Shown: piece by piece, positions 7,293-49,474 of the stretch
How positions within the stretch are numbered: the stretch's first letter is position 1
Layout: each line of letters begins with the position of its first letter
Assembly: GCF_006345805.1 (NCBI RefSeq)
Contig: NW_021832381.1
Span: 62,001-126,000, forward strand
Reading direction: 5' to 3'
From: Octopus sinensis
Taxonomy: Eukaryota
DNA: 64,000 nt
Position numbers and translations under genes: made by a program
Notes under the pieces: generated by a model
Told to the model about the DNA's origin: nothing
The model's database searches: none
What the model saw: the letters and a program-made list of their open reading frames with translations, nothing else

Positions 7293-8729
7293 ATGCTGCG
7301 AGCTCTAACATCTGTACGAGTTGCTGTGATAGGTTCCGGTCCTGCAGGTTTTTTTGCTACCGGAAACATTCTTAAAGTTAAAATATTAATTACTACGTTT
7401 TAAAGTGGGGTAATAATGTATTTGTTGATATGTTTGAAAAAATGCCCGTCCCATATGGCCTTGTTCGCTACGGAGTTGCCCCCGACAACAGCGACGTCCG
7501 GGTATCCTGTTTATTCATTTTTCTTAACAGAACATAATCCAAACATTTGAAAAAACTATGAAAAATTCAAGATTTTCATTTCGTGGGAACGTGGCACTGG
7601 GAAGTGATATTTCCCTTGATGATCTCAGTCTCGCTTATCATGTAGTTATTTTGGCTACAGGTGCAAATAAACCAGCTAAATTGAATTTGACTGAAGTACT
7701 ATTGATTTGCTAGTCAAGTCTAGAGAGAAGTGACAGCTCACGAGGTGATGGGTTTGGTGAATGGACACCCCTCTTCTGACTTAAGCGTATATCAATTCGG
7801 TGTTATTGGCAGTTCTTGAATTCGCTCAAGAATTCTCGAAGTGTCGCGGTTATTGGAGTTGGAAATGCTGCTTTAGATGTAGCACGAGTACTTCTAATGG
7901 GTGGAACTGGCTACTTGGATCAATTCAGCGAACATATTCCTCAAGATGTTATGACTTCTTTAAGCTCACTGAATATCCACTCAGTTAAACTTTTTGCTCG
8001 ACGGCACGCAATCAATTCAGCATTCTCAACACGCGAATTACGTCATTGCACTCGCCTGTTTAAAGTACAAATAGAAAATTTATTTCCTCAATTTGTACCT
8101 TCCAGTTTATATTAAACCGAAAATATATCTGTTAGATCTTTCCCGTGTTGATAGACGGAAGTTTGAATTGATTATGAAATGTGCGGGGGAGGCAGGTAGT
8201 GCATCAAAAAAAATGATAATCTCGTATCTACGCCGTCCTCTTAACTACTCGAAGGGAATATTGACTCTCGGCATTAATGTGTGATCAGTCGTGATTATAA
8301 ATTAGGAAATTTCACAAAATAATTACTCCGAGATAAGAGAATCTGATCGAAAAGAGTACTATGAATGTGATCAAGTAAGAAGAATAGTTCATATTTTATA
8401 ATTAGATAGTCACTAGTTTGGGTTCATATTCTGATATTGAATCAAATGTTGATAATGTGTTTCCTTGTGGGTGGGCACGGACTGGTTCGGCTGGAACAAT
8501 TCACGACACTCTTGTCGATGCGACCTCACTTACAAATGCGCTAAGAACTGAGTTTCCTATTCTCTTTGAACAAAACAAGCCAGGAATTGACTTGCCTGCC
8601 ATTAAACATAAATTAGAGGGATTAAAAATAATTACTCAAACTGGATGGGAGAAAGTGAAAGAATTTGAAAGATTAAACTCAATCAGAGTTCGAGATTACA
8701 ATAAACTTATTGATATTGCTTATTCTTGA
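7293..8729 (+). CDS. FDXR: NADPH:adrenodoxin (ferredoxin) reductase
   Basis: VAVIGSGPAGF, PVPYGLVRYGVAPD, FRGNVALG, VAVIGVGNAALDVAR, FSTRELR and GWARTGSAGTI; seven GT-AG introns of 26-31 nt. Confidence 0.93.
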
Positions 8730-11868: not shown

Positions 11869-12106
11869 TTTATTAATAAAAAAATTAATCAACTAATTAA
11901 TTGCCTAACTAAGTTTTGAGCCTTCGAAGTGAACAAGGGGTCCCACTCCACACATTTCCTCCTCTTCTTCATCTTCTCTGGTTCTGTAGATTTTTGAGAA
12001 GGTGCAGTCCAGCGTCTTTCGTTAATTAAATGTCATAAAAAAACTGGATTGAAGAGCATCGAACGAGATACTCTCCAGAGTCCTCTTAAAAACAGTTGAC
12101 TGCATA
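11869..12106 (-). mobile_element. LINE 3' end interrupted by Helitron 1
   Basis: Similar to 57848-57962 plus 58630-58775; AATAAA at the 3' end; continues briefly beyond the Helitron at 14652. Confidence 0.6.
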
Positions 12107-12127
12107 TCTTAATAATAAAATGGTATG

Positions 12128-12196
12128 GTGTGTGTCTGTCTGTCTGTCTGTCTGTGTGTCTGTCTGTGTGTCTGTCTGTCTGTCTGTCTGTGTGTG
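12128..12196 (+). repeat. (GTCT)n/(GT)n microsatellite near the Helitron 5' end
   Basis: Visible directly; mirrored at about 48896-48945 in copy 2. Confidence 0.95.
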
Positions 12197-12224
12197 CACA
12201 CCAACTTCAAATTGGCAATACGAT

Positions 12225-13585
12225 GTCCTCGACTTACATGATGAGGTCCTTAAAACCTTCCCCCCAAAAAAATTAAAAAAAAATTTTCTGCATTTTGGTT
12301 AAAATGAACAACTACAATGTCCTCGACTTACATGATGAAGTCCTTAAAACATTCCCCCCAAAAAAATTAAAAAAAAATTTTCTGCATTTTGGTTAAAATC
12401 AACAACTACAATGTCCTCGACTTACATGATGAAGTCCTTAAAACCTTCCCCCCAAAAAAAATTAAAAAAAAATTTTCTGCATTTTGGTTAAAATGAACAA
12501 CTACAATGTCCTCGACTTACATGATGAAGTCCTTAAAACCTTCCCCCCAAAAAAATTTAAAAAAATTTTCTGCATTTTGGTTAAAATGAACAACTACAAT
12601 GTCCTCGACTTACATGATGAAGTCCTTAAAACCTTCCCCCCCAAAAAAAATTAAAAAAAAATTTTCTGCATTTTGGTTAAAATGAACAACTACAATGTCC
12701 TCGACTTACATGATGAAGTCCTTAAAACCTTCCCCCCAAAAAAAATTAAAAAAAATTTTCTGCATTTTGGTTAAAATGAACAACTACAGTGTCCTCGACT
12801 TACATGATGAAGTCCTTAAAACCTTCCCCCCAAAAAAAATTAAAAAAAAAATTTCTGCATTTTGGTTAAAATGAACAACTACAATGTCCTCGACTTACAT
12901 GATGAAGTCCTTAAAACCTTCCCCCCAAAAAAAATTAAAAAAAAATTTTCTGCATTTTGGTTAAAATGAACAACTACAATGTCCTCGACTTACATGATGA
13001 AGTTTTTAAAACCTTCCCCCCCAAAAAAAATTAAAAAAAAATTTTCTGCATTTTGGTTAAAATGAACAACTACAATGTCCTCGACTTACATGATGAAGTC
13101 CTTAAAACCTCCCCCCCAAAAAAATTAAAAAAAAATTTTCTGCATTTTGGTTAAAATGAACAACTACAATGTCCTCGACTTACATGATGAAGTCCTTAAA
13201 ACCTTCCCCCCCAAAAAAAATTAAAAAAAAATTTTCTGCATTTTGGTTAAAATGAACAACTACAATGTCCTCGACTTACATGATGAAGTCCTTAAAACCT
13301 TCCCCCCCAAAAAAATTAAAAAAAAATTTTCTGCATTTTGGTTAAAATGAACAACTACAATGTCCTCGACTTACATGATGAAGTCCTTAAAACCTTCCCC
13401 CCAAAAAAATTAAAAAAAAATTTTCTGCATTTTGGTTAAAATGAACAACTACAATGTCCTCGACTTACATGATGAAGTCCTTAAAACCTTCCCCCCAAAA
13501 AATCAAAAAATTATTTTCTGCATTTTGATTAAAATGAACAACGCGAATGTCCTCGACATTCATGATGAGGTCCATTAAACCTTCA
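12225..13585 (+). repeat. About 94-bp minisatellite, 14 units plus a degenerate partial unit
   Basis: GTCCTCGAC recurs at 12225, 12319, 12413, 12508, 12601, 12697, 12791, 12886, 12981, 13077, 13171, 13267, 13362, 13456 and 13549. Unit length varies only in the C/A/T homopolymers. Confidence 0.97.
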
Positions 13586-22918: not shown

Positions 22919-23637
22919 ATGTCTTCTCGTTGGAGTTTGGAATGGATGTGCATTACTGGTCTACTCTACACTGAAATGATTATAGTTTTTCTACAATTAT
23001 CTCACTTAATATCCGCTGCTAGGTTAGTATTTGTTACCACTCAATTTAGATGGAGAAAAATAGTAAAGAGTAAAATAGTCCAAAAACCACTGAGTTATCT
23101 GCAATATTATATGTCAATAATTTTTTTCATCTTATTGATTCTTATGACCGGTATTTTTATTTCATAATTCTCTGACTCGATTTTTCAAATTGCCAGAAAC
23201 AGCAAAGAAAACAATAAAACTTCCCTGGTTGCTAATGCAATAGGGCAAATGAAATTATTTCGTGCTCAACGAAATCTCTATATTTTGTTCTTCTCAATGT
23301 TTCTTCTTTGGTTGTCATTTGATTGTGATGTTTTTTTAGGGTCATCTGCCGACTTTCTAGCATTCTTTCTCAATACACTACCATGTCAATCAATCATGAA
23401 GCTCTCATAAATCAAGCTAAGAATGCATCAGAATTCGCTGCTAATCTGTTGTGTGACGAGGCAGATAAAGAAAATAGATCGGGCAATGAGTTGGAGATTA
23501 TTAATGAAGGCTTGGAGATATTTTATTTTATGTTAGAGAGGAGAGCTAAAAAGATTGAATTTGATGATTTAAGAGCACAGTGCGACGTTTTGACTGAGGA
23601 ATATGCATTGCTTAAGGAAGAATTAAAGGTACTCTGA
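22919..23637 (+). CDS. BCAP31: B-cell receptor-associated protein 31/29 homolog
   Basis: SLEW..LLYTEM, RWRKI and MKLFRAQRNLYI, followed by a coiled-coil tail. Needs a non-canonical intron at 23151-23174; the exact 3' end is uncertain. Confidence 0.85.
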
Positions 23638-26029: not shown

Positions 26030-27050
26030 TTTAGCTGATTCCGGCTATTGGCGATTCCATTGATCAAATTCATCCACGAATCCCTGTCCCTAACCAGCTC
26101 TACAATCTCCAAAAAACGATTTCCGGCTATTTTAACGACTTGTGATAAGCAAATTAATCATGGTCTTCTTTGTTTTTTTCCAGTAAACGCAGATACCAAA
26201 ATTTTCTTTTTATATCACCCACTCCAAAGTACGTGTCCCATGTATGAAAATTGTTTTTTCCATATTTTCGCCACAAGCGACAATGATGGTTTATTTTTTA
26301 CAAGAACTTTGTTATTTGATACTTTATCGTACCAATTTATTTTCAAAAGTTTGCGCCAGCTCTATAATTTCAATGAATCCAGTCCTAGAACAATGTCAAC
26401 AATTAACAACGATCAAAGAAGACGGAGTACAATTGCGTGGACAAGTCTTATCTTTGTCCTGAGACAGACATCTTTTTTACTTCAGATCCGATTAGATTTT
26501 ATTATCGTACTTCTGCACATGGTCGACCGTTTATTGATTTCCAAGACACAACCACCATCTCTACTTATCAGATTTAATAATATCCAATTTACCGGTACTA
26601 AATCATCTTACATTCCACGTTGCAATATTAAGATCATCAGTGATAAGAACAGGTCAGGAAATAAGCTCATAAAGATGAAATTTTTATCTAGCCATCATTC
26701 TGGTTTTTTATTCTCATGTAATTGTGTCCAAAACAGGGGTGATGTCCGCAACGAAGTCTCGCGAGAATCACGTTTCTTTTTTGGAAATAATGCCAAGACT
26801 CACTTAGTTAATATAATCAAAATTTTGTATAATATTTAGCACCGATGCTCAGCCACGACGATAAAGTGAAGATGGCCGTCGCTTATGGTGTGACCCTAAG
26901 AGGTCTTTCAGTTTTCTTTGTGCCGCATTCCTCCCAATTTCAGAGTGGAATGGGGTTAAATAAATAAAATGGCCTTCGCTAACCATGTCCACAAGATCTA
27001 GATATCTTTTTCCTAAAGCTCGTGAATTCACATTGATTCGAAATCAAAGA
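26030..27050 (-). mobile_element. Degenerate RTE LINE (EN start plus RT C-terminus)
   Basis: LNIATWNVR, KTKIRLVHAIV and SLVAKIWKKQFSYMGHV; same family as 15291-17107. Confidence 0.75.
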
Positions 27051-27319
27051 AATTACGGTCTCTAATTTCTAGTTTGTGAGTCTGAAGCAAAATCCGATGT
27101 TAAAAGAGTAGCAAATTTTTTGAATAGCTTTTTTATTGATGTGACTTGTTAAGATTTTATTTTGATTTAATTTATAACTAATCATTAATTTTCATATTTT
27201 AAACAATAAAAATAAATTAGTCAATCTTGAATTCCAGTTAGTGGTGTTTTACTGTGAAATACCGCAAGAAATTATAGCTAAAGTCTAATTTGTAATTTAT
27301 TTTGAATAGACCGCCGTAT

Positions 27320-30300
27320 ATGAATTCTATAAAGGAAAATAAAATAAAAACCAATTCTGAAGCTTCTCTAGAAGACTACATATCTTTAAAAATACTTGTT
27401 AAAAATATATGTATACGCTGTTCAGCTTAATATAAGGTTCATCTATTGGTTCTAAAAAATATCGACTTTTATATAAACATGTGTTCTCACTTAGTAAACC
27501 TTACGAACTTAAAGTCGGTCATTGTCAACCTTGTTACATCCGTTATTGCAACGAAGACAGTGTTTTATGGGGAGGATTCCAAGCACACAGACAAGTTGAA
27601 TTTCTTTGTAATTTTAAAGATTTTTGGATTGCTTTGTTTCGCGTCGGTACCTAAAACCAGTCACGAATTAAATAAATTTGTCGGTGAATTCAACAAACTT
27701 AAAAAACAATTTTCTGAAACCTTAATCAACTATCATCTGTTTTTTGTCACATTGGAGAACTCTGAGAATAAAATAGGCAGTACAACATTATTTAGAAGAG
27801 CCAAATCAACAGATAGTACAACAAACATGTCTTTTGCTCCAATTGTGGACGACATGGCAATTCCAGATCTTTCCAAAACTTGGTTTTGTGAAGCGTTGAA
27901 AGACAGAAAGTCTACTATGTCATTGCTGTCAATGAAATATGAAGACGATCTCAAATTATTTGTTGATCAATTTTGCTATCAAATTGGCTGTGTTTTGTAC
28001 AAAAAAGTGTTCAATTGGATGGACTTGGACAGTGAAACAGCGTTTTCACCAACTCCATTTGAAATTGATACCGAGTGTTTGTCTAATCTGTCAAAAAAGT
28101 TTTAAAATACTAATTTTATACCAAGAGAACTAAAAAAATATACATTGGTTAGAAATCGTAAATATGTGGCTGATTTAAGTCTATTGATTGGATCTTATGA
28201 CAGGGCAATGCTTTTATATCAAGTTGCCTATGATCTGATAAAAGATTTTGATTTCATATACTGGATTGCTGGTTTCTAATAAATATTGAATCTATAGGAA
28301 TTCTTGAGGGAATTGTAGTAGCTTCTAATTATTCTTCCAAAAAGTTTTTCAATTTTAACAAAATTATAGAAATGTTCTTACGAAAAAATTGCAGCTGACA
28401 GGAAATTTTCTCGACAATTTGATTCAAGTTTTGGATGCTTACGAGAAAGTACAAATATTTGATTATAATACAGACTGAATGGTCATATATTGTCGAATGT
28501 GAGGCGGCGATTGTTGGATTTAATTACGCAATTTCTTCCAAAGTAGATTAATATAGTTTATCCGCTTCAGAATATTGAAAAGGCTCTTTATTTTGCAAGT
28601 CGGTCAGCCAGGATATTGACATCAACAAAAGGGGTCGACAAGGTTTTTTTTATATTTCTTCATTTATAAAGACCCATTTTTATCAACAACATGCAAAATT
28701 TTATCTACTAGCGAAATGTAGGCGAAAAGAAGCATTCTTCCACAGAATGAACATGTTGCATATGATTTCTAATGAAGAGGATGCAGAAAGAGCACATTTT
28801 TTGATTTTAAAGACCGCGAATGTGTTTGGAATGTTTGAAAAAACTCAAATTGGTAAACCTATATGTAGTGATGATAGTTTGGCCACTAATTACAGCGGAT
28901 ATAACTGACATGCTAATACAATCTGTTGATAAACTTGAACATTCCAGTTTTCTTAGTCCGCAATTGGCCTCAATGGCTAGATTACGATATATTCAGAATG
29001 GATTGTGCCATTTCTTTTACCACAGGGCAATCCAGTCGAATGAATGCTTTAATACATTTGTTGAACTGCTTCCAGCACAATCACAGTGTGAAGAATTGTC
29101 TGAGATTTTTATGGGATATCCAATTTCCCCACTTACACTTGAGCACGTCATAGAAATACGGTAAAAATTTAATGTCTATAAAAGCAACATAAACTGCCAT
29201 CAATTGCCTTCAAATTTAACTCCTCATCCTTTCAAGAGAGAAATAGGTCAATCTCCTTTTATTTATACTCCCAACGTTAAGTCTAATGTGTTGTGGGTGA
29301 AGCAATGTGTTAATGTTGTGAATGTCGAGTTATATAACCCATGTCCATTCACTGTTGATATTTCAAATTTGGTATTACGCATTTTTATAGTTTTTAGATT
29401 CCTTCTTTCAGTGGACCAGAGGTATTCATTCCATCCGTGTCATTTTCTATCATTGGCCACTCTCATTACTCTGTTCCTCTAAGGGTCCTTCCCCTTTCTA
29501 CAGGCTTGCTACAGATTGATGGTTATACCTTATTTTAACTCAAATTTAGGATTGAATTTTTTAATTTTTGGCATTGATGTTACTTTGAAAGTTCACCAAT
29601 TCTCAGCTGTGGAAGTTGTAGACGAACTTCCTATTTTATTTCTTATCCAAGATTTTGAGGTTCCTAGCAAAAGTGTCTCATTCGATTTTGAAAATCATAT
29701 TGGACGAATACATTTAGATCTTGTTTCATCGTTTGTTCTTTCTTTAACAAATAGTACCAACATGTCAATATGTCTTAGCAATGCTTCGAATGTCCCAATA
29801 ACATATATTGAACACACCACCAGACCATTCAGTCCTGGTGAATTCAAATTTGAGATGTCATCTGTGAATAATCCACCTATAATTCCACATTCTAACTTCC
29901 ATGTTGAATTTTCGGTTTCCTGTCCTGTATCTCATTCTACACATCACATAATTGAACATTCAATTATGTATTCTTCTAATATGGAATATTATCGACTGTT
30001 GCGGTTGGAAATTGAGTTGGAAAAGCGTGTTCCTTTCTTTGTTCGAGAATATTTTATTCGAACATGTGGCCCACCTTTGTTTTCATTTGTTGTTATTAAA
30101 TTAGTTCACACTCATGTGTATTCTTTACTGTTGTAACCACAGTTGAAAAAGTGAATATTTCTATTCAAAATGATTCTGCTGTAGAGCTTGATAAGCATGT
30201 ACATAAAAAGTTTTATTTTAACTCTTTGATTACAGTTTTGTAGTTAAAGTCGAATGCTTGAACTATATGGAAATGCCTTGGAAGGAGAGCGAGGCTAATA

Positions 30301-30856
30301 AAGCAGTTATTGCTTATTTGCAGTCTCAGTTAGCTATCTACTTTATAATTGATGGTGTCTCTATTCCTTATAACATATTTGAGCTTCCGTGGACAAGTAA
30401 ACAATTAAGTGGAGCTTATTATCGTCCATTTCGTGATTTAAGTTTGTTTTTATAGTTTATTCACCAGGATGTGAATTTGTTGGTCCATACTTCATAGATT
30501 CGGAATTAGTGATGCCTGTTGATGACATATTTTTCACGGATGCTCATATTTTTGACATATCATTTCCCGCTGTAGTATATTCGGCTATGTGGAAGCTCAT
30601 AGTCACACCAATTAGTTCTTCGGATGACTTTAAGGCTGATTTTATATGTATTGGGTCATTGACTAAGCCTCTTAATCTGGTATTTGGATTTCTGACCTAT
30701 CTGTAGGAAATAAATGGCACAAAGTCCCATGAGGATTTTACTTGTCAACTTGTTTTTTTAAGATCAGGATCATATATTGTTGAGTTATTTATTGAGATTT
30801 CCAATGATGAGGCTATTTTGTATGAAATCTTGTCGGCTTGTTTTAAAGTATGCTGA
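27320..30856 (+). CDS. TRAPPC9: Trafficking protein particle complex subunit 9 (NIBP/Trs120)
   Basis: WGGFQAHRQIFGL, RNRKYVADLSL, YWIAGILEG and SPFIYTP..WV..V.LYNPCPF; GT-AG introns of 24-29 nt reconstruct one frame. Confidence 0.88.
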
Positions 30857-34169: not shown

Positions 34170-36330
34170 ACTTTGCTCTAATCCGGCAGCTTAAAGAATT
34201 CATCAACTTCGACCATCATCTTATTACAGTGTTTTTCTTCCGAGCAAACACTTTTAGGTCGTCCATAAAAACAGGCACATTCTCCTCCTCTCCAATTGAT
34301 TGTCACTGATCAAATTGTATGCCTCAATTTTTTGTTTACGGATTAACTTACAAGTTACAGTCCGACCCCCAAATGGGGCACCAAGTGCCCCAAATGCGGG
34401 GGTGCCCCAAAAACAGGGTTTGTTATTTTTTAAAAATTAAACCATTAATAAACATCAAAAAACATTTTTACTAAAATATTCAGTTATTTTCTTTTTATTT
34501 GTAGAGTTTTGTCTGATATTGTTCGTCAATTTCAGCCGAAAATCAAAAAAATCTCGGAGCATACTTGGTGCAACATTAGAAATTTTTTCTTCTAAATTGT
34601 TAAGCAGATCTTTTGTTTTTGCTACGACATTTTCACTATTTTCGGTTTCTGAATATGTATCATAAACATTATTGTTCATGTCTTCGCATTCTCCATCAAT
34701 TGTTTCGTTAACAACTTGATCTAAATGTTCATCTGTTAGACAGTTTTTTGTTGCATAAGAATCACGGTTCCTGTCGATTTTCTTCCAACAATTAACAATA
34801 CTTTTAGCATCTATTTTCTCCCATCCTTTTGAAATTAGCATCATAACCTGACGCAAATTTAATTTACCAATAGAATGTGTAAAATCGTTTTCGAAATCTT
34901 GAAAACATAAAAATTCCATTAAGAAAGAGGAATAATAATCTTTAAAAATCTTGATTATTCCCATATCCAAAGGTTGTAAATAGGGCGTTGTATTTTTCGG
35001 CAAAAATAAAAATTCGATGTTCGAACATTCGGCAGTTTTATGGCATCCCGCATTGTCAAGTATTAATAATATTTTTCTGTTGTTTTTGCAAAACGATTCA
35101 TTATAAGTGTAAGCCAACTCATAAAAGTCTTTCCAGTCATCCATGCATTTTGAGAAGATGAATACAATAACCAAAATCTTGAACATCAAAATTTTTTAGA
35201 CACCGAGGTTTTTATATTTTCCAATAATCAATGGATTAAGTTTTTCCCGATTAAACTGCAGCATAGAAGAACAGTGAGTCTTTCTTTCCCTTGTTTATAA
35301 CCAAAACACGGTTCGCCTTGTTCAACAAATGATTTTTGAGGAGTTCTTTTTTAAAAAGCGCAGTTTCATCACAATTAAATATATTCTCAGGTCCATATTT
35401 TAATACTTTCTGGTCATATTTTTCAAAATAATTTTTCACATAAGATAAATCACATGAAGCTTTTTCACCACATATTGACTTGAATTGAAGTTCATGCCGC
35501 AATTTAAATCTATCAAGCCACCCATTGGAAGCTTTAAAAGAAGTAAATCCAATTTTTGAAGCTGTAACTAAGGCAATTTTTTTCAAATAGGGCCTGAAAT
35601 CGGAATTTTATCTACGCGTAGTCTTTGAAATATTTCAAAGACTTGATCATCAAATTTATCTTTATCGGCTTTAAATGTGTCATATTCCTCAGAAATAGTA
35701 TTGCCGTGTTGCAAGAAAGGTACAATATTTCGTTTTATTCTTGATATTGTTCCTTTACTTGTGTTGTACTTTTTCATTAGTTGCCTCTCAGATAAATTTT
35801 TCTTCAAAATTTCTTTAGCAATCTTCAATTTAGTTTCGTAATCCATAACCACAACAATAAAAATATAAATTGAAAATAAAACAAAAAATAATTAATTTAT
35901 TATAATTTTATTTTATTTTTAATTCCTTATAAATGATTTTATGGTGCCCCAAAAATTCCATAATTTTTTATCGATTTTTTTTTTTTCTGCCAAAATGTAC
36001 TTTTGGAATAAAGTGCCCCAAATTGCGGGGGTGCCCCAAAATCCGAGGGTGCCCCACCCCTGGGGTCTGCCCCATTTTGGGGTCGGACTGTATATAGATT
36101 TGAGATGCAAGTAATCGGCCTCAGATCATTGGTTAAGTCACAAATTCCTTTTTTTGGAATGAGAGAGGTAATTCCGGTGTAGACCAACTCATCAGGTGTA
36201 TACTTTCCATATATAATCTCCGTGACTTTCTTACAGAGGTCATCGTGGACTGCACTGAAATTTCTTAGAAAAAAATTGTATATGCCATCACATTCGCAGA
36301 CGCTCTAATTTGGCAGCTGTTAATGATTTC
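34170..36330 (-). mobile_element. R4-like RT fragment interrupted by the pogo element
   Basis: CDGIYNFF..LIPKKG..RPITCISNLY on one side, and ISDNQL and FMDDLKVF on the other side of the TA insertion. Confidence 0.7.
34358..36090 (-). mobile_element. pogo/Tigger-type Tc1-mariner transposon with frameshifted transposase
   Basis: 23-bp TIR CAGTCCGACCCC(C/A)AAATGGGGCA and TA TSD; HTH/CENP-B (KASNGWLDRFK) and DDD motifs (IFNCDETAL, LILDNAGCH, LQPLDMGII) spread over three ORFs. Confidence 0.93.
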
Positions 36331-37591: not shown

Positions 37592-40154
37592 CTATTTATT
37601 TAAGTGATGCAACAGTTTTTCAATGGATCGTACCGATCTCTCCAGCTCTGGGGTTAGTTTGGATTTTAAGTCCAAGCCATGTGCCAGTTTAATGGCATAT
37701 CTCCGCGTTTTCTCCAAAAGATCAATATGTTTCTTTCCTTCGCAGCTTCCTAACCATCCTTGAGATCCATAGATCAGGAAGGGTTCTATACACGCAGAGT
37801 ATACGTATAAGAACGTTTCCGGTTTCAGCTGGAATCGCATCAGAGCTTTCAATATTTGGGTAGCCTTGTTCTTTCTCTTCCTTATATACATCTTGAATGA
37901 ACCAGTTGCATCCACAACTATTCCGAGGTATTTAAGATCCTCCACGGGTTTTATCGCTCCGGTGTTAATACAAACATCAGGTTTTCTTCTCCTTTCACCA
38001 ATCCAACAAACAGTGCTTTTTTCAAAAGATAAAGACAAGCCTTTATCCTGGCACCATTTGCCAATTTTTTCGATATGACTATGGGTTCTTTTCCACGATA
38101 TTGATTTGCTCATAGAGAAATCCATAATTAAAATATCATCTGCGTAGATGACCATCTCCATGCTAGGGAGATCCACTTGAGGAATGTCGCACATCACACA
38201 GTTAAATAAAAGTGGACTGATGACAGATCCCTGCGGAACTCCTCTCTTAAGCAAAATTCTCTTCGATAATTGGTTTCCGACCCGTACAAACGATTCTCTT
38301 CCCGAGAGGAAACTCTTCATCCAAACTAGGGCTGTCTTTCCAACGTTAAAATTGTATAAAGTTCGTAATAGCCCGGCATGCCAGACGCTATCAAATGCTT
38401 TTGATATGTCTAGAAATGCAGCCGTAAGATACTCTTTTTTCCTTTGTGCTGTAGATATGGCCTCCTTTAACAGTGAAAAGCAATTTCCAGTGCCCTTGTT
38501 CCGCCGAAAACCCCATTGCTCTTTCAAGAGATACTGTTTATCTTCAATATAAGTTGATAGTCTTTTAAAGACAATTTTTTCCATGATTTTTGAGATAGAA
38601 CATATGAGACTGATTGGTCTGTAATTTGCAGGATCCGAACTCGGTTTTCCTTTCTTCGGGATCATGCGAACAATTGTCCTCTTCCATGCTTGGGGAACAT
38701 GTCCAATACTCCACGAAGAGTTAAATAACTTCCATAGTTCATATAATAAAGGCATTCCCGCCTTTTTGAAGGTAATCATCGGTATGTAGTCCCAACCAGG
38801 GGATTTATTTTTTACATTCGTGTATTGCTAATTTGATTTCTTCCATAGAAATAGCTCCACATAATGGTCCCTCCGTAAGCGATAGTAACTCCCAAATACA
38901 CGTCTCATTTTGTATAGTCTGAGAAATCATAGACAAAGGGTCCACTTCTTGAATCTTAGCTAGCTGCTCTTTTAACTTCTCAGGTACTTCCTCTCTTGGA
39001 ATCAGATTGCCATCATTGGACTTGAGTTTTATCTCTCCACCCTTTTTATCAGAACTCATCTTTGAGAAAAGTTTCCAAAAATTCGGATTTTTATGAAAGA
39101 GTTTAGAGCATTCTTTTTTCCAGCTCTCCTCTACTATATCTTTAGATAATTCCTCTGATAAGTTTTTAATCGATTTTATTCTTTGTTTGAGGAAGATAGC
39201 GTCTTGCGGGTCCCAACACCGCTTTAGTTTACTTTCCAAGTTCCTTTTTTCACGAAGTAGTTTGGATTGCTCTTCATTTATCAATCGATTTTTGTACGAG
39301 AAGAGAAACCTCTTTTTTCCATAGTCCTCCAGATAACTTCGAATAATGTTTCTCATTCTTTCATCCAAATAATTGATCTCGTCAAGATTTAGTATTTTCA
39401 ATTCTTGAGTATTTGCCAATTTCATAGACATATAAAAGTTAAAATGATTCCAATTAATGTTGCTGATATTATAACCAAGAAATACATCCTCAGTGAGAAC
39501 TGCTCCCGTTCTTAGTTTCATCGTTTGCGGAAGATGGTCACTCCCAACATCATTTTCAACATAAGGCCGGTCACACAAACCACTTAAGGCATTTGCAACA
39601 ATAAACAATCCTAATCGATCACCACCTTGCTGCTGAAAGTGGTTAAGCTCTTCAGATGTTAAAATTTGAAAATTTGAGGTTTTTTTGATCTCAAGTAAAC
39701 AATTTCCATCCTGATTTGACTTCACGCACCCATATGCAGTATGCTTCGCATTTAAGTCTCCAACAAGAATTGGATTTTCATTTCCTTCCATAAAATTTTT
39801 GACAATCGACGAATAATCTTTCAACCTTTTGAAGTATATACCTCCAACGGTTATCCATCCAATAGAAGTTTTTAAATCAATGGATGCTAATTCACGTACA
39901 TTCTGTTCAATTATTCTTGGATTCCGAATGTCAATAGACTTTTTGTAAAATATTGATGTTCCTGTGCCGGCGTTAGCACCAAAATGCCAAGGAATATCAA
40001 TCGAGCTGTATCCAGGAATAGTGATACTTCCAGACTTCTTCATTTTCGTCTCGTTAATGATAAATACATCCATCTGAACTGTGCTGATAAGAGCTATCAG
40101 CTCTGCTGCCCGCTTTCGAAGAGAGCGGGCATTAACCAGGGTAATTTTGGTCAC
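37592..40154 (-). CDS. Element A ORF2, AP endonuclease plus reverse transcriptase
   Basis: NARSL, INETK, GDLNAKH, SDHLP, YRPISL, QWGFR, DISKAFDSVWH, GVPQGSVISP and YADD. One +1 frameshift in an A-run near 38805. Confidence 0.9.
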
Positions 40155-41164
40155 GTTTGATTTATTTGGTGGCTGCTTCCCTCTTTTAGGAGAGCCACCA
40201 AACCGAGTAAAAACTTGGCATCTTTTTTAGTTCTGGTCATGTCCTTAATAGATCTTTCGAGCTCACTAATTAAGTCAGCTCGAGGTCGACCCGTCATTGA
40301 CCCAGCTCCTGAAGTCGACAAAGTCTGCACCGCCGAGTGAGATATAGTCGTTTCCTCTGTCTGTGTTCCAACTTCAACTGTTTTCCTAACTCTTGGAACG
40401 TTCCATCCCGCCCATGGCTTCAAGGGTAAATTTTTTATGTCTGTTTGGTTGATTTTAGCATTCGCCGAAGCTTCTTTTAACAGTTTCTGAACCAGAATTT
40501 TATCATTTTTCAGCTTTGAAGCTTCTTTAGCTTTCTCACAGCCCCGATAATTTGCCAAGTGGCTCGAAGAACCGCAGTTGACACATTTTTTCATGTTAGA
40601 GTCCTTGCAATCTGTTCCAGCATGTGTACCCGAACAAAATAGACATTTCTCCTGATTTTTACAGAAGCGTGCTATGTGGCCAAACCCTTGGCATCGATAG
40701 CACTGGACTTCCGGTTTTCTGTACCACTCGGCCTTTACATTCGAAAAGCCAATCTTTAGCCCCAATCGTACAAGCGATTGAGCTTCTCCATGATCAGAAG
40801 TTACCAATTTAATGATAGGGAGTCTCACTCCCCTTTTCTCAAAGCGTTCGAGAGTCATTTTTCCTTTCACTTTGCCCTTCAGGAAGTCTTCGAGTTCCTC
40901 AATTTCGATCCAAGTTGGGACATTTTTTAGAATTATTGCCACTGGCCCGAATTTCTTATTTTTGAGAGACTGGCCTCCCTCTCCAAAAGGTTTGCTTTCT
41001 TCTAATTCAATTTGAAAGTTTTCCACATCTTTTTCGACTTTGAAATTCAGTAGGAAATCTCCTGACTGTCGGCGAGAGACTCGTGCCTTCTTGATCGATT
41101 TCATGTTGCATAGCGTGTTAAAAATATTAATAGATCCCATCGAGGGGTTATTGACTTTAAGCAC
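40151..41164 (-). CDS. Element A ORF1, gag-like nucleic-acid-binding protein
   Basis: CYRCQGFGHIARFC, CLFCSGTHAGTDC and CVNCGSSSHLANYRGC; the N-terminus is truncated or frameshifted. Confidence 0.9.
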   Translation of the reverse strand: MLKVNNPSMGSINIFNTLCNMKSIKKARVSRRQSGDFLLNFKVEKDVENFQIELEESKPFGEGGQSLKNKKFGPVAIILKNVPTWIEIEELEDFLKGKVKGKMTLERFEKRGVRLPIIKLVTSDHGEAQSLVRLGLKIGFSNVKAEWYRKPEVQCYRCQGFGHIARFCKNQEKCLFCSGTHAGTDCKDSNMKKCVNCGSSSHLANYRGCEKAKEASKLKNDKILVQKLLKEASANAKINQTDIKNLPLKPWAGWNVPRVRKTVEVGTQTEETTISHSAVQTLSTSGAGSMTGRPRADLISELERSIKDMTRTKKDAKFLLGLVALLKEGSSHQINQT

Positions 41165-41229
41165 AACAGTAATGTTCCTCCAAACTTGTTTTCATATGAT
41201 AAATGCTCGTTTTCTGTCTACAAATACCG

Positions 41230-42715
41230 TTGAATGAATGAATGAAGTTTATTGTAATTAACAGAGAAAGAGAAAGTGACAGGAATTAAGGACGGTGATA
41301 GGACGAGACTGATGCCAAGGCAACTGAACTCTTCTGAGCTTGCGTCCAATTCATCTGTCGTGAGCCAGAGTTAATGGTGGCTATGTTGCTGAATTGCTCC
41401 CTTCTAGCAGGAGCTCTTGCAGCATATCCATATCCACTCCAAGTAGGGTCAGGGCTCCTACACAACAGCGGAAGCATTCCAGTTGGGAATCTCTGTTGTG
41501 TAGGTCCTGATCCGAGTGGGGACCTCTTTGTGACAAAGCTTTGTCACGGTGGGTTTTTCTCCTCTTATGAGGGACAGGCGAGCGGACCACTTCTGAGTTA
41601 TGGCACTCATTAGTGGTTGTCTTCGAGTTTGTGAGTGTGCTGGGGGCCGGCGACGTCTGAGTAGAGACATCGACTTTGGACGGACTTCGGGGAGCCGCTT
41701 TTGTCCAGACTGATTTTATCGGTTCGGCTTTTACCCAGCGTACTGGGCTTTTTGTCTGTGGGCTCTTCGCAGCCCTTGAGGCTGCTGTTGCTGCTTTGGC
41801 AGACGGACATCCACCGTAGCACGCCAAGTGCCCAATGTTCTTGCAATTAATGCAAGTTTTTGCAGCTGGGACACTCGGTTTCGGCTTGGAACTCGGGCAG
41901 TTTTGGTGCCTGTGTTCTTTACCGCAGAGGAGACAACGGAGTTTTTCTGAGCATCTGTAGGACGTATGTCCAAACTGATTGCAACGGAAGCATCTCGTTG
42001 CTGAGGGCTTGTGCCATCCGCAGCGGATATGGCTGAAGCCCGCAGTTATTCCAAAGCGGATGAGGGTGTTGGCCTCGGCTCTGGAATCCAGCGTGAGTCT
42101 GCCGATAGGCATGTCGGTTCCATTGCGAGAGAATCTTTCGAACTTGAAGTCCGATTCTAGACTTTCTCTCAAGTGGAGGTTAAGATCCTCTGTCGAGATC
42201 CAATGAGGGATTCCTTTAAAGACCAAGACTGAGGCCTTCTCAGCTATTGAGGCAAGTTTATGGCCGCCTTCGCCAAACATATTCGATTGAGTCAGCTCTG
42301 CTTTGAACGCAGCAGCATCCTCTGGCGAACTGAATTTTAGAATGAAGGTGCCGGACTTCTGTAAGGTTATCCGGGCTATGGAAGCAGTTGGAGACTTGGA
42401 TAGGAGGTTAAACCTCTTGATCTTTCCAAGTGCCGAGTTTTCGATACTCAGAGAATATGTGAGGTTTGAGCTGTTAGCCTCAGTTGTCGTCTGATAGAAT
42501 TGGGTCTCACTGTGTTTTTGAGCCACAGTAGGGTTCGGAGGGTTCGGATGTTCGGTGGGATATTCAGGTTCGCAAAAGGGCTGTGGCTTGGCCGCTGTTC
42601 GTCCTTGAACTTTGGAGCAAGCTTTGATTGATTCGAGATTTTGTTTATTCTTGACCATTTTTTCTTTATTTTCCTTTACCATGCAACTGGATTCTCACAG
42701 CAATTCTCAAATACT
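41230..42715 (-). mobile_element. Array element A': ORF1-only (gag-only) LINE derivative
   Basis: Intact 433-aa ORF1 (41381-42682) with CFRCNQFGH, CLLCGKEH and CINCKNIGH, followed directly by a 150-nt 3' end ending in AATAAA..(TTCA)n; no EN or RT. Confidence 0.9.
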
Positions 42716-42725
42716 ACAAATACCG

Positions 42726-45142
42726 TTGAATGAATGAAGAATTTTATTGTAAGAAAGAAGAAACGAGACAGAAACTTAGTGCGGAAAAATAATTTTGACG
42801 AGACGATTGCTTTGGGCATTCGAGCTCTTCCATGGTTCGTCCGCTTTGTCTGTCTATGAGCAGGGACACCTGCTATTCTCCACGATCGATGAATAGGTCA
42901 GCCACTTTAGAGCGTTTCCGAAAAGTTCGGATAGAAGCCTCGATGGTTTGCCGTAGCTCTGGAGACTTGCTCTCCGCCCAGCTTGGGACAGGCTCCCATG
43001 GATTTAGCATATAGGCTAGTTTTAGAGCGTATCTCCGTATTTTTTCGCATTTTCGCAGAATTTTCTCATATTGTTTCGAGTAGAACCAAGCTTCCATACC
43101 ATACAGTAGGCTGGGCAAGATTGTTGCATGGTATACAAATAGGAAGGTATTTGGATTCAAGTGCATGCCTCTTAGAAGTCGGAGAGCGGCGATGGCTTTC
43201 CCTTTTCTCCGTTTGAAATGCAAATGGTATCTCGAGTTTGCGTCGATTGTGAGCCCCAGGTAACGTATGCTCTCAGGGCGAGCGATTTCCACCAAAGAGC
43301 CGGGTTTGCGATCTTGCGACTTTCTTGGGTTAATTTAGAGATATGCAGATTTGTCCATGGCCAGCGAGAGTCGCTTACCAATGCACCAATTCTTTATCTC
43401 CTCAATGTAGCCGGCAAGTCGTTTCTCAGAGGCATTGGTGTCCATCGAGGTGTCCAGAACGAGAACATCGTCTGCGTAGAGGAGTAGGGATGTCCTGGGA
43501 TCGGAGGGTGTGGGGAAACTGCTCATTACCAAATTGAAAAGGATTGGGCTGAGACAGGACCCCTGCGGAACCCCCCTTCGAAGCGAAATATATCTTGAGA
43601 AGAAGCCCGACTCAGAGATATAAGAGTAACGATTTGAGAGGAAGCAGCGCATCCAGAGAAAGACTTCCGCTGTTGGCTCACAGAGTTCGATCCTTTCCAG
43701 GAGGTCTCTGTGCCAGACGCTGTCAAAAGCCTTTGAGATGTCCAGACATACAAGAGATAAAGTTTCTTTAAACTCCATTGCTCTCGAGATGGTGGACTGT
43801 ACCGTAATGAAACAGTCACCGCAGCTACGTTCAGAGCGAAAACCCCATTGCTGCGGGAGCAGCACTTTCTTCTCTTCGGCGTGGAAGTCGAGGCGCTTGG
43901 CCATAATTTTCTCCATCAGCCTTGAGATAGTTGGGATTAGGCTTATGGGACGGTAGCTGTTAGCGAGATTCACCGGTTTCGCAGGCTTTTTGATCATCCG
44001 GACCTTCGAGATTTTCCATTTTCCCGGCACATGGCCCCACTTGAGACTTGCCGTAAACAGATCCGCGAGGAACACATGTAGGTCTTCGGGTGCTTTCTTA
44101 AACAATCGCATCGGTATTTTGTCATGGCCCGGTGCGTTGCCTTTTGACGAACGGATGGCCCAGGTCACCTCTGCAATGGTGATCGGGTGATGGTCCGACG
44201 ACAGTGGGCGCGGCAGTGGCTCCGACTCCCGGTTTTGCAACGTTTCCGGATTGGCCTCCTGGATAGTGGCCAGGTGTTCTGCGAATATGTTTGGCATCTC
44301 TTGTGGCGAGGCGGGCATACCAGACTGGTTGCACAACCTCGGGGGTGAGGATTTTCCTTCGAGGTTAGCCACTTTGTGGAAACAGTCCCAGAAATTTGGG
44401 TTTCTGTAGTCCAGGTTTTGACAAGCCTTCTACCATTTCCTGGCTGCTTCCAGCTTTGTCGCGACGTGGACCTTATACCCAATTTCCGAGATCATGTTCC
44501 TAAGTCTTCCCCTGTCAGCTGGGTCCACACAGCGTTTGAGTTTATTTCTCAGCCGCTTCCTTTCGTTGAGGATGATCTTCACTTTCACGCTCGGAGTGGT
44601 CCTCCGTGCGCGGTCTGCACTTGGCAATTCTCCGTACGACGTTAGATACTGAAGCATGAATTTGCTTAACTTATCGCTTGCGGAGTCGATGTCGAGGGCT
44701 GAGTTATACCCAACAGGGCGACCGTTGTCGTGCAGGAATGCACTTATGAAGCTCCTGTAGTGTGGCCAGTTGATCTTTGAGAGATTGTAGTGAGAGGAAA
44801 TGTGTTCTTGTCTAACAATGCTAGTGTGAATTTTGATCTCCATTGGTAGGTGGTCACTTCCGATATCGTCAAGCACTGTAGGCTTTTCCATAAGGTTAGC
44901 GACAGAGTGAGAACAGATGCACAGGCACAGGTTGTCCCCGCCAAAGGGCGAGTGGTGGTTCGGGTCTTCGGATGTCCTGACGAAAACACCAAGCTTGTCA
45001 GTGACCTTCTTCAGTGTTCGACCATCTTGGTTGGTTAACCGACATCCAAACGCCGTGTGCTTCGAGTTTAAGTCTCCGATAAGAAGGCAATGAGCTATGC
45101 TTGAGAAGAATTCGTCAATCAATCTGATGCAGGGGGGGAGAT
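42726..45142 (-). mobile_element. Array element B: 5'-truncated LINE (partial EN plus RT)
   Basis: Begins at GIYLPP within EN; GDLNSKH, SDHLP, YRPISL, GVPQGS and YADD split over three ORFs; ends in AATAAA..TTCAA. Confidence 0.9.
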
Positions 45143-46702
45143 AAATACCGTTGAACGAACGAACAGATTTTATTGACTTAGCAACCGAAAGAGAAGAGTT
45201 TTATGAAAAGGTTTTATTTAAAATCGAGACACCGGAAGCCTCCTCCTTGCTTTCCTATTCACTTCTCATGCCCTTTGCAATGAGCAGAGGACTTGCCAAA
45301 TGTTTTGAGTTTGTTCGTCTAGCTCTCTGGGGAGATCCTGATCAAGCCGTAGCTTATACGCCAGTTTAATCGCAAAGCGCCTTGTTTTCTCCAGTTTGGT
45401 GATTATGCGATTTCTCTCGTCTGTAGGGTACCAACCTTCATGTCCATAGATAAGGACTGGTTCTACAGTCGCCTTATAGATGAAGAGAAAGGTGTCTGGG
45501 GAGAGATGGAAGCGTATAAGGCTTCTCAGGATCCCGGAACATTTCCTTCTTCTAGATTCCACGAACTTAAGGAACGATCCGTCAGCCCCGATCGTTACCC
45601 CAAGGTAGCGTAGGTCGTCAGTGATTCTTAGTCCCATTGTCTCCAGAATTGGTTCTCTTTCTTTCCGAGTTTTAGAAACCCACGTGATGGTGGACTTGTC
45701 TCGTGCTAAGGAGAGGGCTTTCTCCGTAGCCCAAGACTCAACCCTCGCTATATATTCCCTCAGGCTTTTCCAAGAGAGGTCCTTGGATCGCGACAGATCC
45801 GTAACCAATATGTCGTCCGCATAGATAATTAGTAGACTCTCCGGATTTACTGGTTTCGGGATGTCGGCAACGTATAAGTTGAAAAGTAGAGGGCTCAGGA
45901 CCGACCCTTGAGGCACTCCCCTCCTTAGATTGATTGTATCCGAGGTCCGGTTACCACATCTGATAAAAGACTTTCGCATGTGTAAGAAATTCTCTAGCCA
46001 TTTGACAGTCCTTTGCCCCGGATGGATACTGATGATCCTTTCCAGGAGGCCTACGTGCCAAACGCTGTCGAACGCCTTTGAAATGTCCAGACAAACAGCT
46101 GTCATCCCCATCTTGTGTGTAAGGGCCCTCGAGATTTGCGTTTCCAGTTGGGCAAAGCAGTTTCCACAAGACTTCCCACGTCGGAAACCCCATTGTTCTT
46201 TAGCCAGGTAACCTGACTCCTCCACGAGAATAGATAATCTGTTAAAGATTATACGTTCCATGATTCTTGATATGGAGCAGATGAGACTTATGGGTCGGAA
46301 ATTTTCTGCACGGTCTTTAGGTTTCCCTGCCTTTGGAATCATTCGTACCACGGTTTTCTTCCATGCATTCGGGACGTATCCAGTCTCCCAACTGGCATTG
46401 AAAAGTATCGTTATTATCTTGACTAGGCTTATCGGGGCCTCTTTGAAGACTCGGATGGGTATGTAATCAAAACCCGGTGCGTTGTCCTTGCATCTTTTAA
46501 TTGCTAGTAGGGTTTCATCAAGGGTGATTGCGTGACAAAGTCGACCAGGGGACATTTTCGCAGAGGCTATTGCCCTCTTTTTATCGTCCACTAGCTCGGC
46601 AGCTCGCTTCGCTCACCGCGACCTAGCTCCTGCGGAGGGCCTGTTTCATCAAACAACTATAAGTTTATGTAGATGTATAAAACTACCTGGTTTAATGTAA
46701 CC

Positions 46703-47134
46703 CTATTCTATCGCCTGTTGATAAACGATGTTTGTCGTCCGTCCTTCCTTGGCATATATGAATAAATTTTCTCTTCTGCCTACCCTCGAGCATCCCACAT
46801 ACAGCTGTCCATATGAAAAGCACTCACTCTCTAAAAATAACCCAACTACCTTTAATGACTGTCCCTGGGCCTTGTTTATTGTCATTGCAAAACTCATCCT
46901 CAAAGGAAATTGCAGCCTTTTAAATCTAAATGGTAATTCATCAGAAATTATCGGAATTCGTGGAATATAAACATCCTCACCTCTATACTTACCTGTTAAT
47001 ATCGTCGCCTCTATTACGTTAGCCATCAAATTTTTGATAACTAACCTCGTTCCGTTGCATAATTTAGGTGGCGCAAGATTTCGTAATAAAACCACTGGAA
47101 CGCCTATCTTTAACTTTAAAAGATGATTCGGCAT
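46703..47134 (-). pseudogene. Helitron PIF1-like helicase C-terminal remnant
   Basis: [55 protein letters not shown]; no Rep domain. Confidence 0.88.
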
Positions 47135-47974
47135 TCCAGAGGGATCTAAGGAGTTTAAAAATTCAATCCGGTTGAATTTTTAGAAAATAACAAAAAATAA
47201 AGAAAAACAAATAAAAATGAATAATTTAAAAACAAAAAATAAAAAAAACAAAAAAAAAACTTTAAAAATTTGTAAAATAGTATAAACAAAAAAAATCTCT
47301 GCCGCCACGGCAACAACCAGTCTAATTTTTTAACAGCCAATTAAGATAATGCTTAAGAGCCTTTATAGTCCGGAGATTTAGCTTAGTGACCTTGATTAGA
47401 CAAACCACTGGCGGAAATGGGGCAGCCGGAGATGGGGCAGGCAGAGTAGCAGCAGCCAAAAAAGCGACACACAAAAAAGATTTAATTAATTACCTTAAGC
47501 TGACCGTTTTTTCTTCAGCTTCGTTTTTCCTCCTTCGGTTATCTATTTAAAAAATTATTTTTGAATAATAAAAAAGTTTAGGAAAAGAGGCATACCGAAA
47601 ACAAATTCTATCTTTACGAAAAACTTAAGTAAATAGTTAATATTTTTACGCAAATTCTTCTGATTGCGCTGTCAATTGGTGGTAAATTGTGTTAATGATT
47701 GTGCTAATGTGGTTTTAACTATCAAAGTGTTTTTCAAAATCTGTTAATTGCACACTCTATTCAAGGTCGTGCAATCTGTAATTGCACATTCTGTCAAAGT
47801 CAAATATGATAATAGCTATAATTTTGATTCATGGTCGATAATGATATATGCATTTAATTTTAAAGAGAAAATCATAGGATGAATTAAATTTCTTTATCGC
47901 GAATAATTGGGAGTTCATCATTGTTAATATTCTCGCTGTCGTTTTCATCAAGGATATTCTTAATACGTGAGATT

Positions 47975-48870
47975 TTTGCCTCGAAGGTTTTAATGGACCT
48001 CATCATGAATGTCGAGGACATTAACGTTATTCATTTTAATCAAATGCAGAAAATAATTTTTTGATTTTTTGGCGGGAAGGTTTTAAGGACCTCATCATGT
48101 AAGTCGAGGACATCGTAGTTGTTCATTTTAACCAAAATGCAGAAAATTTTTTTAATTTTTTTTGGGGGAAGGCTTTAAGGACCTTATCATGTAAGTCGAG
48201 GACATCGTAGTTGTTCATTTTAACCAAAATGCAGAAAACTTTTTTTTTAATTTTTTTTGGGGGGAAGGTTTTAAGGACTTCATCATGTAAGTCGAGGACA
48301 TTGTAGTTGTTCATTTTAACCAATATGCAAAAAAATTTTTTTTAATTTTTTTTGGGGGGGAGGTTTTAAGGACTTCATCATGTAAGTCGAGGACATTGTA
48401 GTTGTTCATTTTAACCAAAATGCAGAAAATTTTTTTTAATTTTTTTGGGGGGGAAGGTTTTAAGGACCTCATCATGTAAGTCGAGGACATCGTAGTTATT
48501 CATTTTAACCAAAATGCAGAAAATTTTTTTTAATTTTTTTTGGGGGGGAAGGTTTTAAGGACCTCATCATGTAAGTCGAGGACATCGTAGTTGTTCATTT
48601 TAACCAAAATGCAGAAAATTTTTTTTAATTTTTTTGGGGGGGAAGGTTTTAAGGACCTCATCATGTAAGTCGAGGACATCGTAGTTGTTCATTTTAACCA
48701 AAATGCAGAAAATTTTTTTTTTAATTTTTTTTGGGGGGGAAGGTTTTAAGGACCTCATCATGTAAGTCGAGGACATCGTAGTTGTTCATTTTGACCAAAA
48801 CGCAGAAAAATTTTTTTTAATTTTTTTGGGGGGGAAGGTTTTAAGGACCTCATCATGTAAGTCGAGGACA
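47975..48870 (-). repeat. About 94-bp minisatellite, 9 units plus a degenerate unit
   Basis: GTCGAGGAC at 48011 (degenerate), 48103, 48195, 48291, 48386, 48480, 48575, 48669, 48766 and 48861. Confidence 0.95.
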
Positions 48871-49474
48871 TCGTATTGCCAATTTGAAGTTGGTGTGCAC
48901 ACACAGACAGACAGACAGACACACAGACAGACAGACAGACACACACCATACCATTTTATTATTAAGATTATATCTGTCGGGACAAAACAGCTCGGGTCGA
49001 CATCTTGAATTTTCGCCAGTTGTTGACGTAAAGCGTCAGGTACATCGTCTCGGTTGATGGCATAGCCATTTTCTGTGGTTAAATTGATTTCATCTCCTTT
49101 GCATTCCGTTTCCTTTAGGCGATATGCCTTCCAGAAACTTGGGTGTCTTCGATTAAGCTTAAAACATTCCAATCTCCAAGCTGAGTCAATGTTTTCTTTA
49201 GACCTTTTGTCGATCCTCTTTTTAAGAGAGGAAATCATTGCTCGTAGGCGTGTGCAGTCTGTTGGGTCAAAACATCTGCGTAGCCTCTTCTGGTATCTTG
49301 CCTTTTCTTTCAGGAGACTCACTACTGTGTCGTCGAGTTCATGAGTCCCTCCACCAGAGTGTTTAATGAACTTTTTCCTGGAGAACTTCTCCAAAGAAGT
49401 GTTGATAAGATTCCTAACGAGCTAGTCCAGACTTTCAATTTGTTTTGTCTCGTGTGGGACGCGACATATTAATA

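Follow-up and report, generated by a model that had tools for sequence, protein, structure and literature searches.

A possible TG 3' splice site in a 24-nt intron of a BAP31/BAP29 homologue from a genome with ultra-short introns

The AG at the 3' end of an intron is the most rigid of the splicing signals. The locus considered here, a BAP31/BAP29 homologue within a window of 64,000 nucleotides (the whole stretch of DNA that was analysed, to which all positions refer), raises the question of how a full-length protein can be produced when the second intron of its gene seems to lack that signal. Window positions 23151-23174 (+) read GTATTTTTATTTCATAATTCTCTG, a segment of 24 nt that has GT and TG at its ends and no AG inside. 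The donor bases GTAT at 23151-23154 provide the GT 5' end, and TG occupies 23173-23174, where the AG should be. In the unspliced frame that starts with the ATG at 22919, this region reads ACC GGT ATT TTT ATT TCA TAA, while excision of the 24 nt joins ACC G/AC TCG (Thr-Asp-Ser; slashes mark splice junctions), from which the frame reaches the motif MKLFRAQRNLY. Under use of the TG, the predicted mRNA junction 23150/23175 would read ...TTATGACCG/ACTCGATTTT. With a G at 23150 as well as at 23174, excision of 23150-23173 as a GG..CT intron would yield an identical mRNA, and GT..TG is the only one of these two equivalent boundary placements with a standard donor. A preliminary description had reported the GT-TG segment with its in-frame TAA and without AG, the restoration of the Asp codon and of the frame upon its removal, and a nearest in-frame AG that would require a 57-nt intron, pass over two other AGs and delete the Asp; each of these points was recovered on re-reading, with the stop at 23165-23167 and the two skipped AGs, at 23196 and 23202, out of frame.

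The locus reflects either non-standard splicing in an animal with tiny introns or a single base of the assembly that is wrong or variant. In the reading preferred here, with a probability of about 0.5, the major (U2-type) spliceosome would remove intron 2 with the TG as its 3' splice site; this figure, as well as the weight given to the three rival readings, is a judgement and not a measurement. The coordinates of the features involved are collected in Table 1.

Table 1. Window coordinates of the BAP31/BAP29 homologue, of the other genes with mapped introns and of the transposable elements.
Feature	Position	Strand	Details
BAP31/BAP29 homologue CDS	22919-23637	+	4 exons; 212 aa with all three introns out; stop TGA at 23635-23637
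Exon 1	22919-23022	+	MSSRWSLEW...ISAA plus two bases of the Arg codon
Intron 1	23023-23049	+	27 nt, GT-AG, phase 2 in the Arg codon AG/A; in frame, stop-free
Exon 2	23050-23150	+	WRKIVKS...LLILMT plus the G of the Asp codon
Intron 2 (putative GT-TG)	23151-23174	+	24 nt, GT...TG, phase 1 in the Asp codon G/AC; C at -3, exon base +1 is A
CATAA, candidate branch site	23163-23167	+	Putative; holds the intron's last adenosines (intron positions 14, 16, 17), 7-10 nt 5' of the TG
In-frame TAA within intron 2	23165-23167	+	Upon retention the protein would end ...LMTGIFIS
Terminal TG in the place of AG	23173-23174	+	T at 23173 is the sole base deciding canonical versus non-canonical
Exon 3	23175-23310	+	(D)SIFQIARNSKENNKTSLVANAIGQMKLFRAQRNLYILFFSMFLL plus two bases of the Trp codon
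First downstream AG	23195-23196	+	22 nt past the TG; 46-nt intron, frameshift, stop after 15 codons
Third downstream AG	23206-23207	+	Only short in-frame canonical intron (57 nt); deletes DSIFQIARNSK
Intron 3	23311-23339	+	29 nt, GT-AG, phase 2 in the Trp codon TG/G
Exon 4	23340-23637	+	VICRLSSILSQ...EELKVL, then stop
Possible extra intron in exon 4	23510-23536	+	GCTTGGAGATATTTTATTTTATGTTAG; 27 nt, GC-AG, in frame, stop-free
SDHA introns	about 4117-2000 (gene)	minus	n = 8; mapped by homology
UBE2D-like E2 introns			n = 4; UQ_con domain
Adrenodoxin reductase (FDXR) introns			n = 7; spliced protein matches PDB 1cjc (1.2e-37), alignment ungapped over the first two junctions
GRAM/RabGAP-TBC gene introns			n = 6; mapped by homology
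USP-type ubiquitin hydrolase introns			n = 7; mapped by homology
SLC1-type transporter introns			n = 9; mapped by homology
GC-AG intron, GRAM/RabGAP-TBC gene	21016-20986	minus	31 nt; only splice restoring the TBC motif IEKDLIRTLPEFHIF; GT-AG alternatives destroy the motif
69-nt intron, USP gene	9965-9897	minus	AG/GTAAGA...GTGTTTAG/G; restores ...TERDFFGQV
Non-LTR retrotransposon ORF clusters (endonuclease + RVT_1), pogo-type DDE_1 transposase	37592-49400 (minus), 61853-63403 (+), 34458-35195 (minus)		

With regard to the host gene, the earlier assignment to BCAP31 is borne out at the level of Bap31-family membership, as the protein matches the Pfam family Bap31 (PF05529) over residues 6-135 with E = 4.8e-24 and 85.2 bits against a cut-off of 22.7. 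Its homologues among BAP29 and BAP31 proteins are 30-40% identical to it. In an alignment of the window protein with 15 homologues (A1), MKLFRAQRNLY is invariant and Asp69, which belongs to the LxxD(A/S) segment, is found in at least 90% of the sequences, and the motif and the Asp are both present only when 23151-23174 is removed. The surroundings of Asp69 read TDSIF in the window and ADSLF in the best homologue. Retention of intron 1 costs 15 bits against the family profile. This intron and the one at 7061-7035 (minus), each of 27 nt, are both in frame and free of stops, and splicing errors at either of them would be invisible to nonsense-mediated decay, because retention adds only 9 residues. 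In exon 4, removal of the possible extra intron gives 110.4 bits with the profile versus 109.0 when it is kept, and takes the odd, hydrophobic segment GLEIFYFML out of the coiled-coil region. The 212-aa protein has no match to Bap31_Bap29_C (PF18035), and the KKxx ER-retrieval tail of its aligned relatives is absent from its C terminus, with no downstream splice option that yields KKxx. A short, diverged protein without this tail is compatible with relaxed constraint.

The options for intron 2 were scored with a profile made from the 15 homologues, from which the window sequence was left out. The AGs located 3' of the TG end at 23196, 23202, 23207 and 23243, and would define introns of 46, 52, 57 and 93 nt from the donor at 23151, the first two out of frame and the last two in frame. 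The GT-TG isoform obtained the highest score of all intron-2 options (109.0 bits), followed by the product of an AT-AC intron at 23153-23176 (105.2 bits), the 57-nt and 93-nt GT-AG isoforms (85.7 and 84.2 bits), the first-AG isoform with its 46-nt intron (33.9 bits) and the retained intron (30.2 bits). The intron had been called obligatory, which holds insofar as a full-length, family-like protein is concerned, and does not hold beyond that. An open frame is a poor guide in this sequence: a window-wide count of GT..NN candidates that join open reading frames gave 253 ending in AG and 259 ending in TG, with no enrichment of AG over TG or over the others, so that frame continuity by itself proves nothing and the intron call rests on homology. 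The context of this count is a window that is AT-rich and repeat-rich.

The homology argument becomes much stronger when the gene structures of distant relatives are considered, since they lead to the expectation of an intron at exactly this site. In BCAP29 of the pipefish Syngnathus scovelli, the Asp codon is interrupted in phase 1 (CTC G/GTAAGG...TTTGTAG/AT GCT), and the neighbouring introns, in phase 2 of an Arg codon (AAG AG/GT...AG/G TGG) and in phase 2 of a Leu codon (TGG CT/GT...AG/G GTT), correspond to the sites of introns 1 and 3 of the homologue, the latter in a Trp codon. All three introns of the homologue therefore match those of pipefish BCAP29 in position and phase. Furthermore, the BAP31-like gene of Saccoglossus kowalevskii has the same phase-1 site in the Asp codon (...tctttcag/AT GCC ATC), and its next intron, in phase 2, lies at the same place as intron 3. 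The preliminary description had placed a phase-1 intron in this Asp codon of human BCAP31; such an intron is present in the pipefish gene, a vertebrate paralogue, and in that of a hemichordate. Judged by these gene structures, intron 2 is an ancient bilaterian phase-1 intron in a conserved Asp codon that has shrunk to 24 nt.

A comparison with the remaining introns of the window shows which of its properties are unusual. Introns were mapped by homology in the SDHA, UBE2D-like, FDXR, TBC, USP and SLC1 genes which, together with the two canonical introns of BAP31, amount to 43. Every one of these ends in AG (42 GT-AG and one GC-AG), and they measure 22-35 nt with a median of 27, apart from a single intron of 69 nt; the GC-AG intron at 21016-20986 carries the sole non-GT donor in this set. 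Two GT-AG introns, at 10052-10029 and 9298-9275, are exactly 24 nt long. Given this length range and the 43 AG ends, a length of 24 nt is ordinary and the TG alone is odd; intron 2 is likewise ordinary in its donor and base composition, and differs from the other 43 at base 23173 alone. The base at -3, a C in intron 2, is T in about three quarters of the mapped introns and C in 5 of the 43. The uniformity of the acceptors means that there is no sign in the window of a generally relaxed acceptor rule. At a frequency similar to that of the fly, the prior expectation of one GT-TG intron among 44 is about 2%, a value that falls if the missing in-frame AG partner is counted and rises if tiny introns relax the acceptor check.

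The proposal in the preliminary description that such introns are defined by length is too simple. Several window introns skip internal AGs situated 16-24 nt from the donor, as seen in SDHA at 3271-3246 (minus; AG at 24 of 26 nt), in the UBE2D-like gene at 7061-7035 (minus; 20 of 27 nt) and in FDXR at 7696-7723 (+; 18 and 23 of 28 nt). Since AGs next to the used one are passed over, the acceptor is not simply the first AG beyond a set length and, moreover, the 69-nt intron of the USP gene, which exceeds every other mapped intron more than twofold in length, indicates that length alone is no selector. At this USP junction, which follows ...DKTE, no GT-AG solution of 20-45 nt is in frame, and the frame-keeping cuts of 21-30 nt end in TA, GG, CA and TC; it was considered as a second non-AG acceptor and rejected, as the canonical 69-nt intron solves the frame. 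Among the introns of FDXR, intron 2 at 7502-7530 (+; 29 nt) has the form GTATCCTG...TTCTTAACAG, which resembles U12 donor and branch boxes with the 'branch' A 3-4 nt from the AG, a likeness that is probably due to chance.

The identity of the organism bears on how such introns should be viewed. The genome is most likely that of a dicyemid and fits Dicyema japonicum, an attribution drawn from features of the window and not from a database match: the best protein matches are spiralian, the median intron measures 27 nt, LINEs are numerous, SDHA and FDXR are present, and GC content and repeat load agree. The reconstructed SDHA shows 72-73% identity to its mollusc counterparts and about 71% to those of a brachiopod and of flatworms. 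Protein searches returned nothing above 40% identity for BAP31, nothing above 73% for SDHA and no near-identical protein, so that transcript-derived proteins of the organism are apparently absent from the collection that was searched. The GC content of the window is near 37%, and the genome of D. japonicum has been described as 67.5 Mb with 36.7% GC and 49% repeats (PMC6736024). Among the 51 animal genomes surveyed in a 2026 study, introns as short as those of the window, about 25-30 nt, were confined to myxobolid myxozoans and Dicyema japonicum (PMC13644364). A myxozoan origin was rejected, as the best SDHA matches are molluscs, a brachiopod and flatworms and not cnidarians, and the window holds both SDHA and FDXR; the myxozoan Henneguya salminicola, by contrast, has been reported to lack mitochondrial DNA of its own and to be no longer capable of aerobic respiration. 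The retrotransposon ORFs lie in the stretches of highest GC content in the window (up to 43-51%), while the gene-bearing parts have 32-36%. Microsatellites of the (GTCT)n type, at 12089-12299 and about 48800-48900, are read as SVCLSVCL or TDRQTDRQ in open frames and recur beside retrotransposon fragments. A run of long open frames at 26039-30703 (+), of up to 266 codons and with no Pfam match, may represent a lineage-specific multi-exon gene.

Introns with TG acceptors have been characterised in other organisms. In human, TG acceptors have been validated in 36 genes, always as alternatives to an AG at most 28 nt away and never as the sole acceptor, the base at -3 being a pyrimidine and that at +1 a purine (Szafranski et al. 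2007, PMC2374985). Among the non-canonical terminal pairs of Drosophila introns, GT-TG occurs most often, in 23 of 60,223 introns, of which 22 have a similar alternative splice nearby (FlyBase 'Rule-Benders', PMC4528330). The window intron resembles these tandems in its GT donor, its TG end, the C at -3 and the A at +1, and in having a companion AG 22 nt past the TG, although this last feature carries little weight, as chance alone will often place an AG within 28 nt. Notwithstanding, the known TGs alternate with a productive AG, whereas the AG partner in the window is out of frame, which would leave the TG as the sole route to the full-length protein; in addition, the putative GT-TG intron is far shorter than its human and fly counterparts. 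In the green alga Micromonas, GT-TG splice sites are annotated for two classes of introner elements, IE-B and IE-D (PMC3879977). Those elements are recently spread repeats of 100-6,494 nt, unlike the single, ancient and position-conserved 24-nt intron of an animal discussed here.

Further comparisons concern the selection of the acceptor. Yeast without Prp18 uses UG, CG and GG acceptors, the majority of them 5' of the regular 3' splice site; U tracts ahead of such sites favour their use. Both Prp18 and Slu7 are dispensable when the distance between the branch and the 3' splice site is short (PMC10711555). The window intron likewise keeps the last G, and its distance from branch to TG is necessarily very short within 24 nt; non-AG use in yeast, by contrast, is a mutant phenotype and a low-level alternative. 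Some short human introns are described as being spliced without U2AF. With regard to animals with tiny introns, the ultra-short GT-AG introns of dicyemids and myxobolid myxozoans have medians of 22-27 nt, those of Dicyema genes measuring 26.2 +/- 1.9 nt (PMC13644364; PMC2222250; PMC6543705), and the dicyemid donor consensus is reduced to GTa (PMC13644364). Intron 2 belongs to the same length class and shares the GTa donor, the lack of a real polypyrimidine tract and the preservation of an ancestral position. However, AG is the one 3' signal that remains in the descriptions of those introns, and it is missing from intron 2. A literature search on non-canonical splicing in dicyemids found nothing relevant.

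If the TG is used, 24 nt would be too little to accommodate a polypyrimidine tract together with a U2AF-type check of the AG ahead of the first catalytic step. It is therefore proposed that the acceptor would be selected during the second step, at the nearest position able to dock a few bases beyond the branch adenosines, which may lie in the CATAA element. In the 42 introns compared, the last A is usually 2-11 nt from the 3' end (15 nt in one case), and A is weakly enriched at intron positions 16-19, a signal too weak to place the branch site. The TG would retain the last G, which could pair with the first G of the intron, and the C at -3 with the purine at +1 would supply the context of the proven human TG acceptors. 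The canonical AG located 22 nt downstream probably competes and would give rise to a frame-shifted, unproductive mRNA, in which case the output may be a mixture. Folding of the RNA at 23141-23215 gave no structure that would hide the downstream AG (z = -0.23), and an Rfam scan of the window for snRNAs and other RNAs returned no matches.

Three rival readings have to be weighed against the use of the TG. The one that survives best, possible although on balance doubtful, is that A is the true or prevailing base at 23173, and that an assembly error or a minor allele conceals an ordinary 24-nt GT...CAG intron. The two states differ by one base, CAG acceptors do exist in the window, and the AG ends of all the other mapped introns point in the same direction. 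If the window belongs to the D. japonicum assembly, its contigs were merged from Platanus (Illumina) and Falcon (PacBio RS II) assemblies of pooled animals with 1.24% heterozygosity, and reduced to one haplotype with HaploMerger (PMC6736024), so that a single A/T difference at this position is not far-fetched. On the other hand, no frameshifts and no premature stops occur in the coding sequences reconstructed from the window, about 8 kb in total, which suggests a low local error rate and argues against a sloppy assembly at the BAP31 locus. Long-read sequencing errors are mostly indels. Moreover, among the six single-base changes that an AG can undergo, the one observed happens to give the commonest working non-AG acceptor, and an allele that kills splicing would be expected to be rare in a consensus.

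An unlikely reading is that the TG is real and unused, in a gene that is crippled or being lost, with splicing at the first AG (46 nt), splicing at the 57-nt site or retention of the intron as the outcome. In human disease mutations that convert AG to TG, neighbouring AGs were activated instead of the TG (PMC2374985). The removal of a 69-nt intron from the USP gene makes an excision of 46 or 57 nt mechanically feasible, dicyemids have undergone many gene losses (PMC6736024), and the divergence of the BAP31 protein, together with its short length and the absence of the KKxx signal, would fit such a fate. Nevertheless, the remaining frame, the other two introns and MKLFRAQRNLY are intact, so that an inactivation would have to be very recent, and the family profile scores the 57-nt isoform 23 bits lower than the GT-TG isoform.

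Other boundaries for intron 2 are very improbable: the 24-nt AT-AC alternative is in frame (Thr-Gly-Ser) and scores just 3.8 bits lower, but it replaces the near-invariant Asp with Gly, and the resulting intron would no longer share the conserved site and phase of its counterparts in pipefish and Saccoglossus. The U12 class, which is characterised by the donor consensus RTATCCTT and the branch box TCCTTAAC, tolerates varied terminal dinucleotides and could accommodate a relaxed 3' end; the first four donor bases of intron 2 agree with this consensus, as do 6 of the 8 positions of its donor GTATTTTT, but ATTTTTAT lacks the ATATCCTT box, no ATCCTT donor box is present, the 3' part TTTCATAATTCTCTG holds nothing similar to the branch box, and the orthologous vertebrate intron, that of the pipefish, is plainly U2-type (GTAAGG...TTTTGTAG).

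As for the implications of these readings, both the existence of GT-TG introns as a rare U2-type class and the ultra-short introns of dicyemids are already known, and what would be new is an animal intron of 24 nt, ancient and conserved in position, whose sole productive acceptor is a TG. Should the T at 23173 prove to be erroneous or allelic, there would be nothing unusual in the case, which would then mainly serve as a reminder that single-base oddities at splice sites in draft assemblies need to be checked against the reads. If the TG is used, gene finders restricted to GT-AG would mis-annotate genes in genomes with ultra-short introns, and a tiny intron with the TG as its only productive acceptor would constitute a natural test of how the second step selects its site when an intron can hold neither a polypyrimidine tract nor U2AF. 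A broader proposal, quite unlikely at present and put forward tentatively, is that in the 22-35-nt introns of dicyemids the 3' site would be set mainly by the distance from the branch or from the 5' end, with a weakened proofreading of the AG, and that the TG could then be the constitutive and sole productive acceptor of intron 2. If true, this geometry would contradict the rule derived from human genes, by which a TG is never the only acceptor. Non-AG acceptors would then be expected to form a class large enough to measure across dicyemid genomes, and perhaps across those of myxobolids as well.
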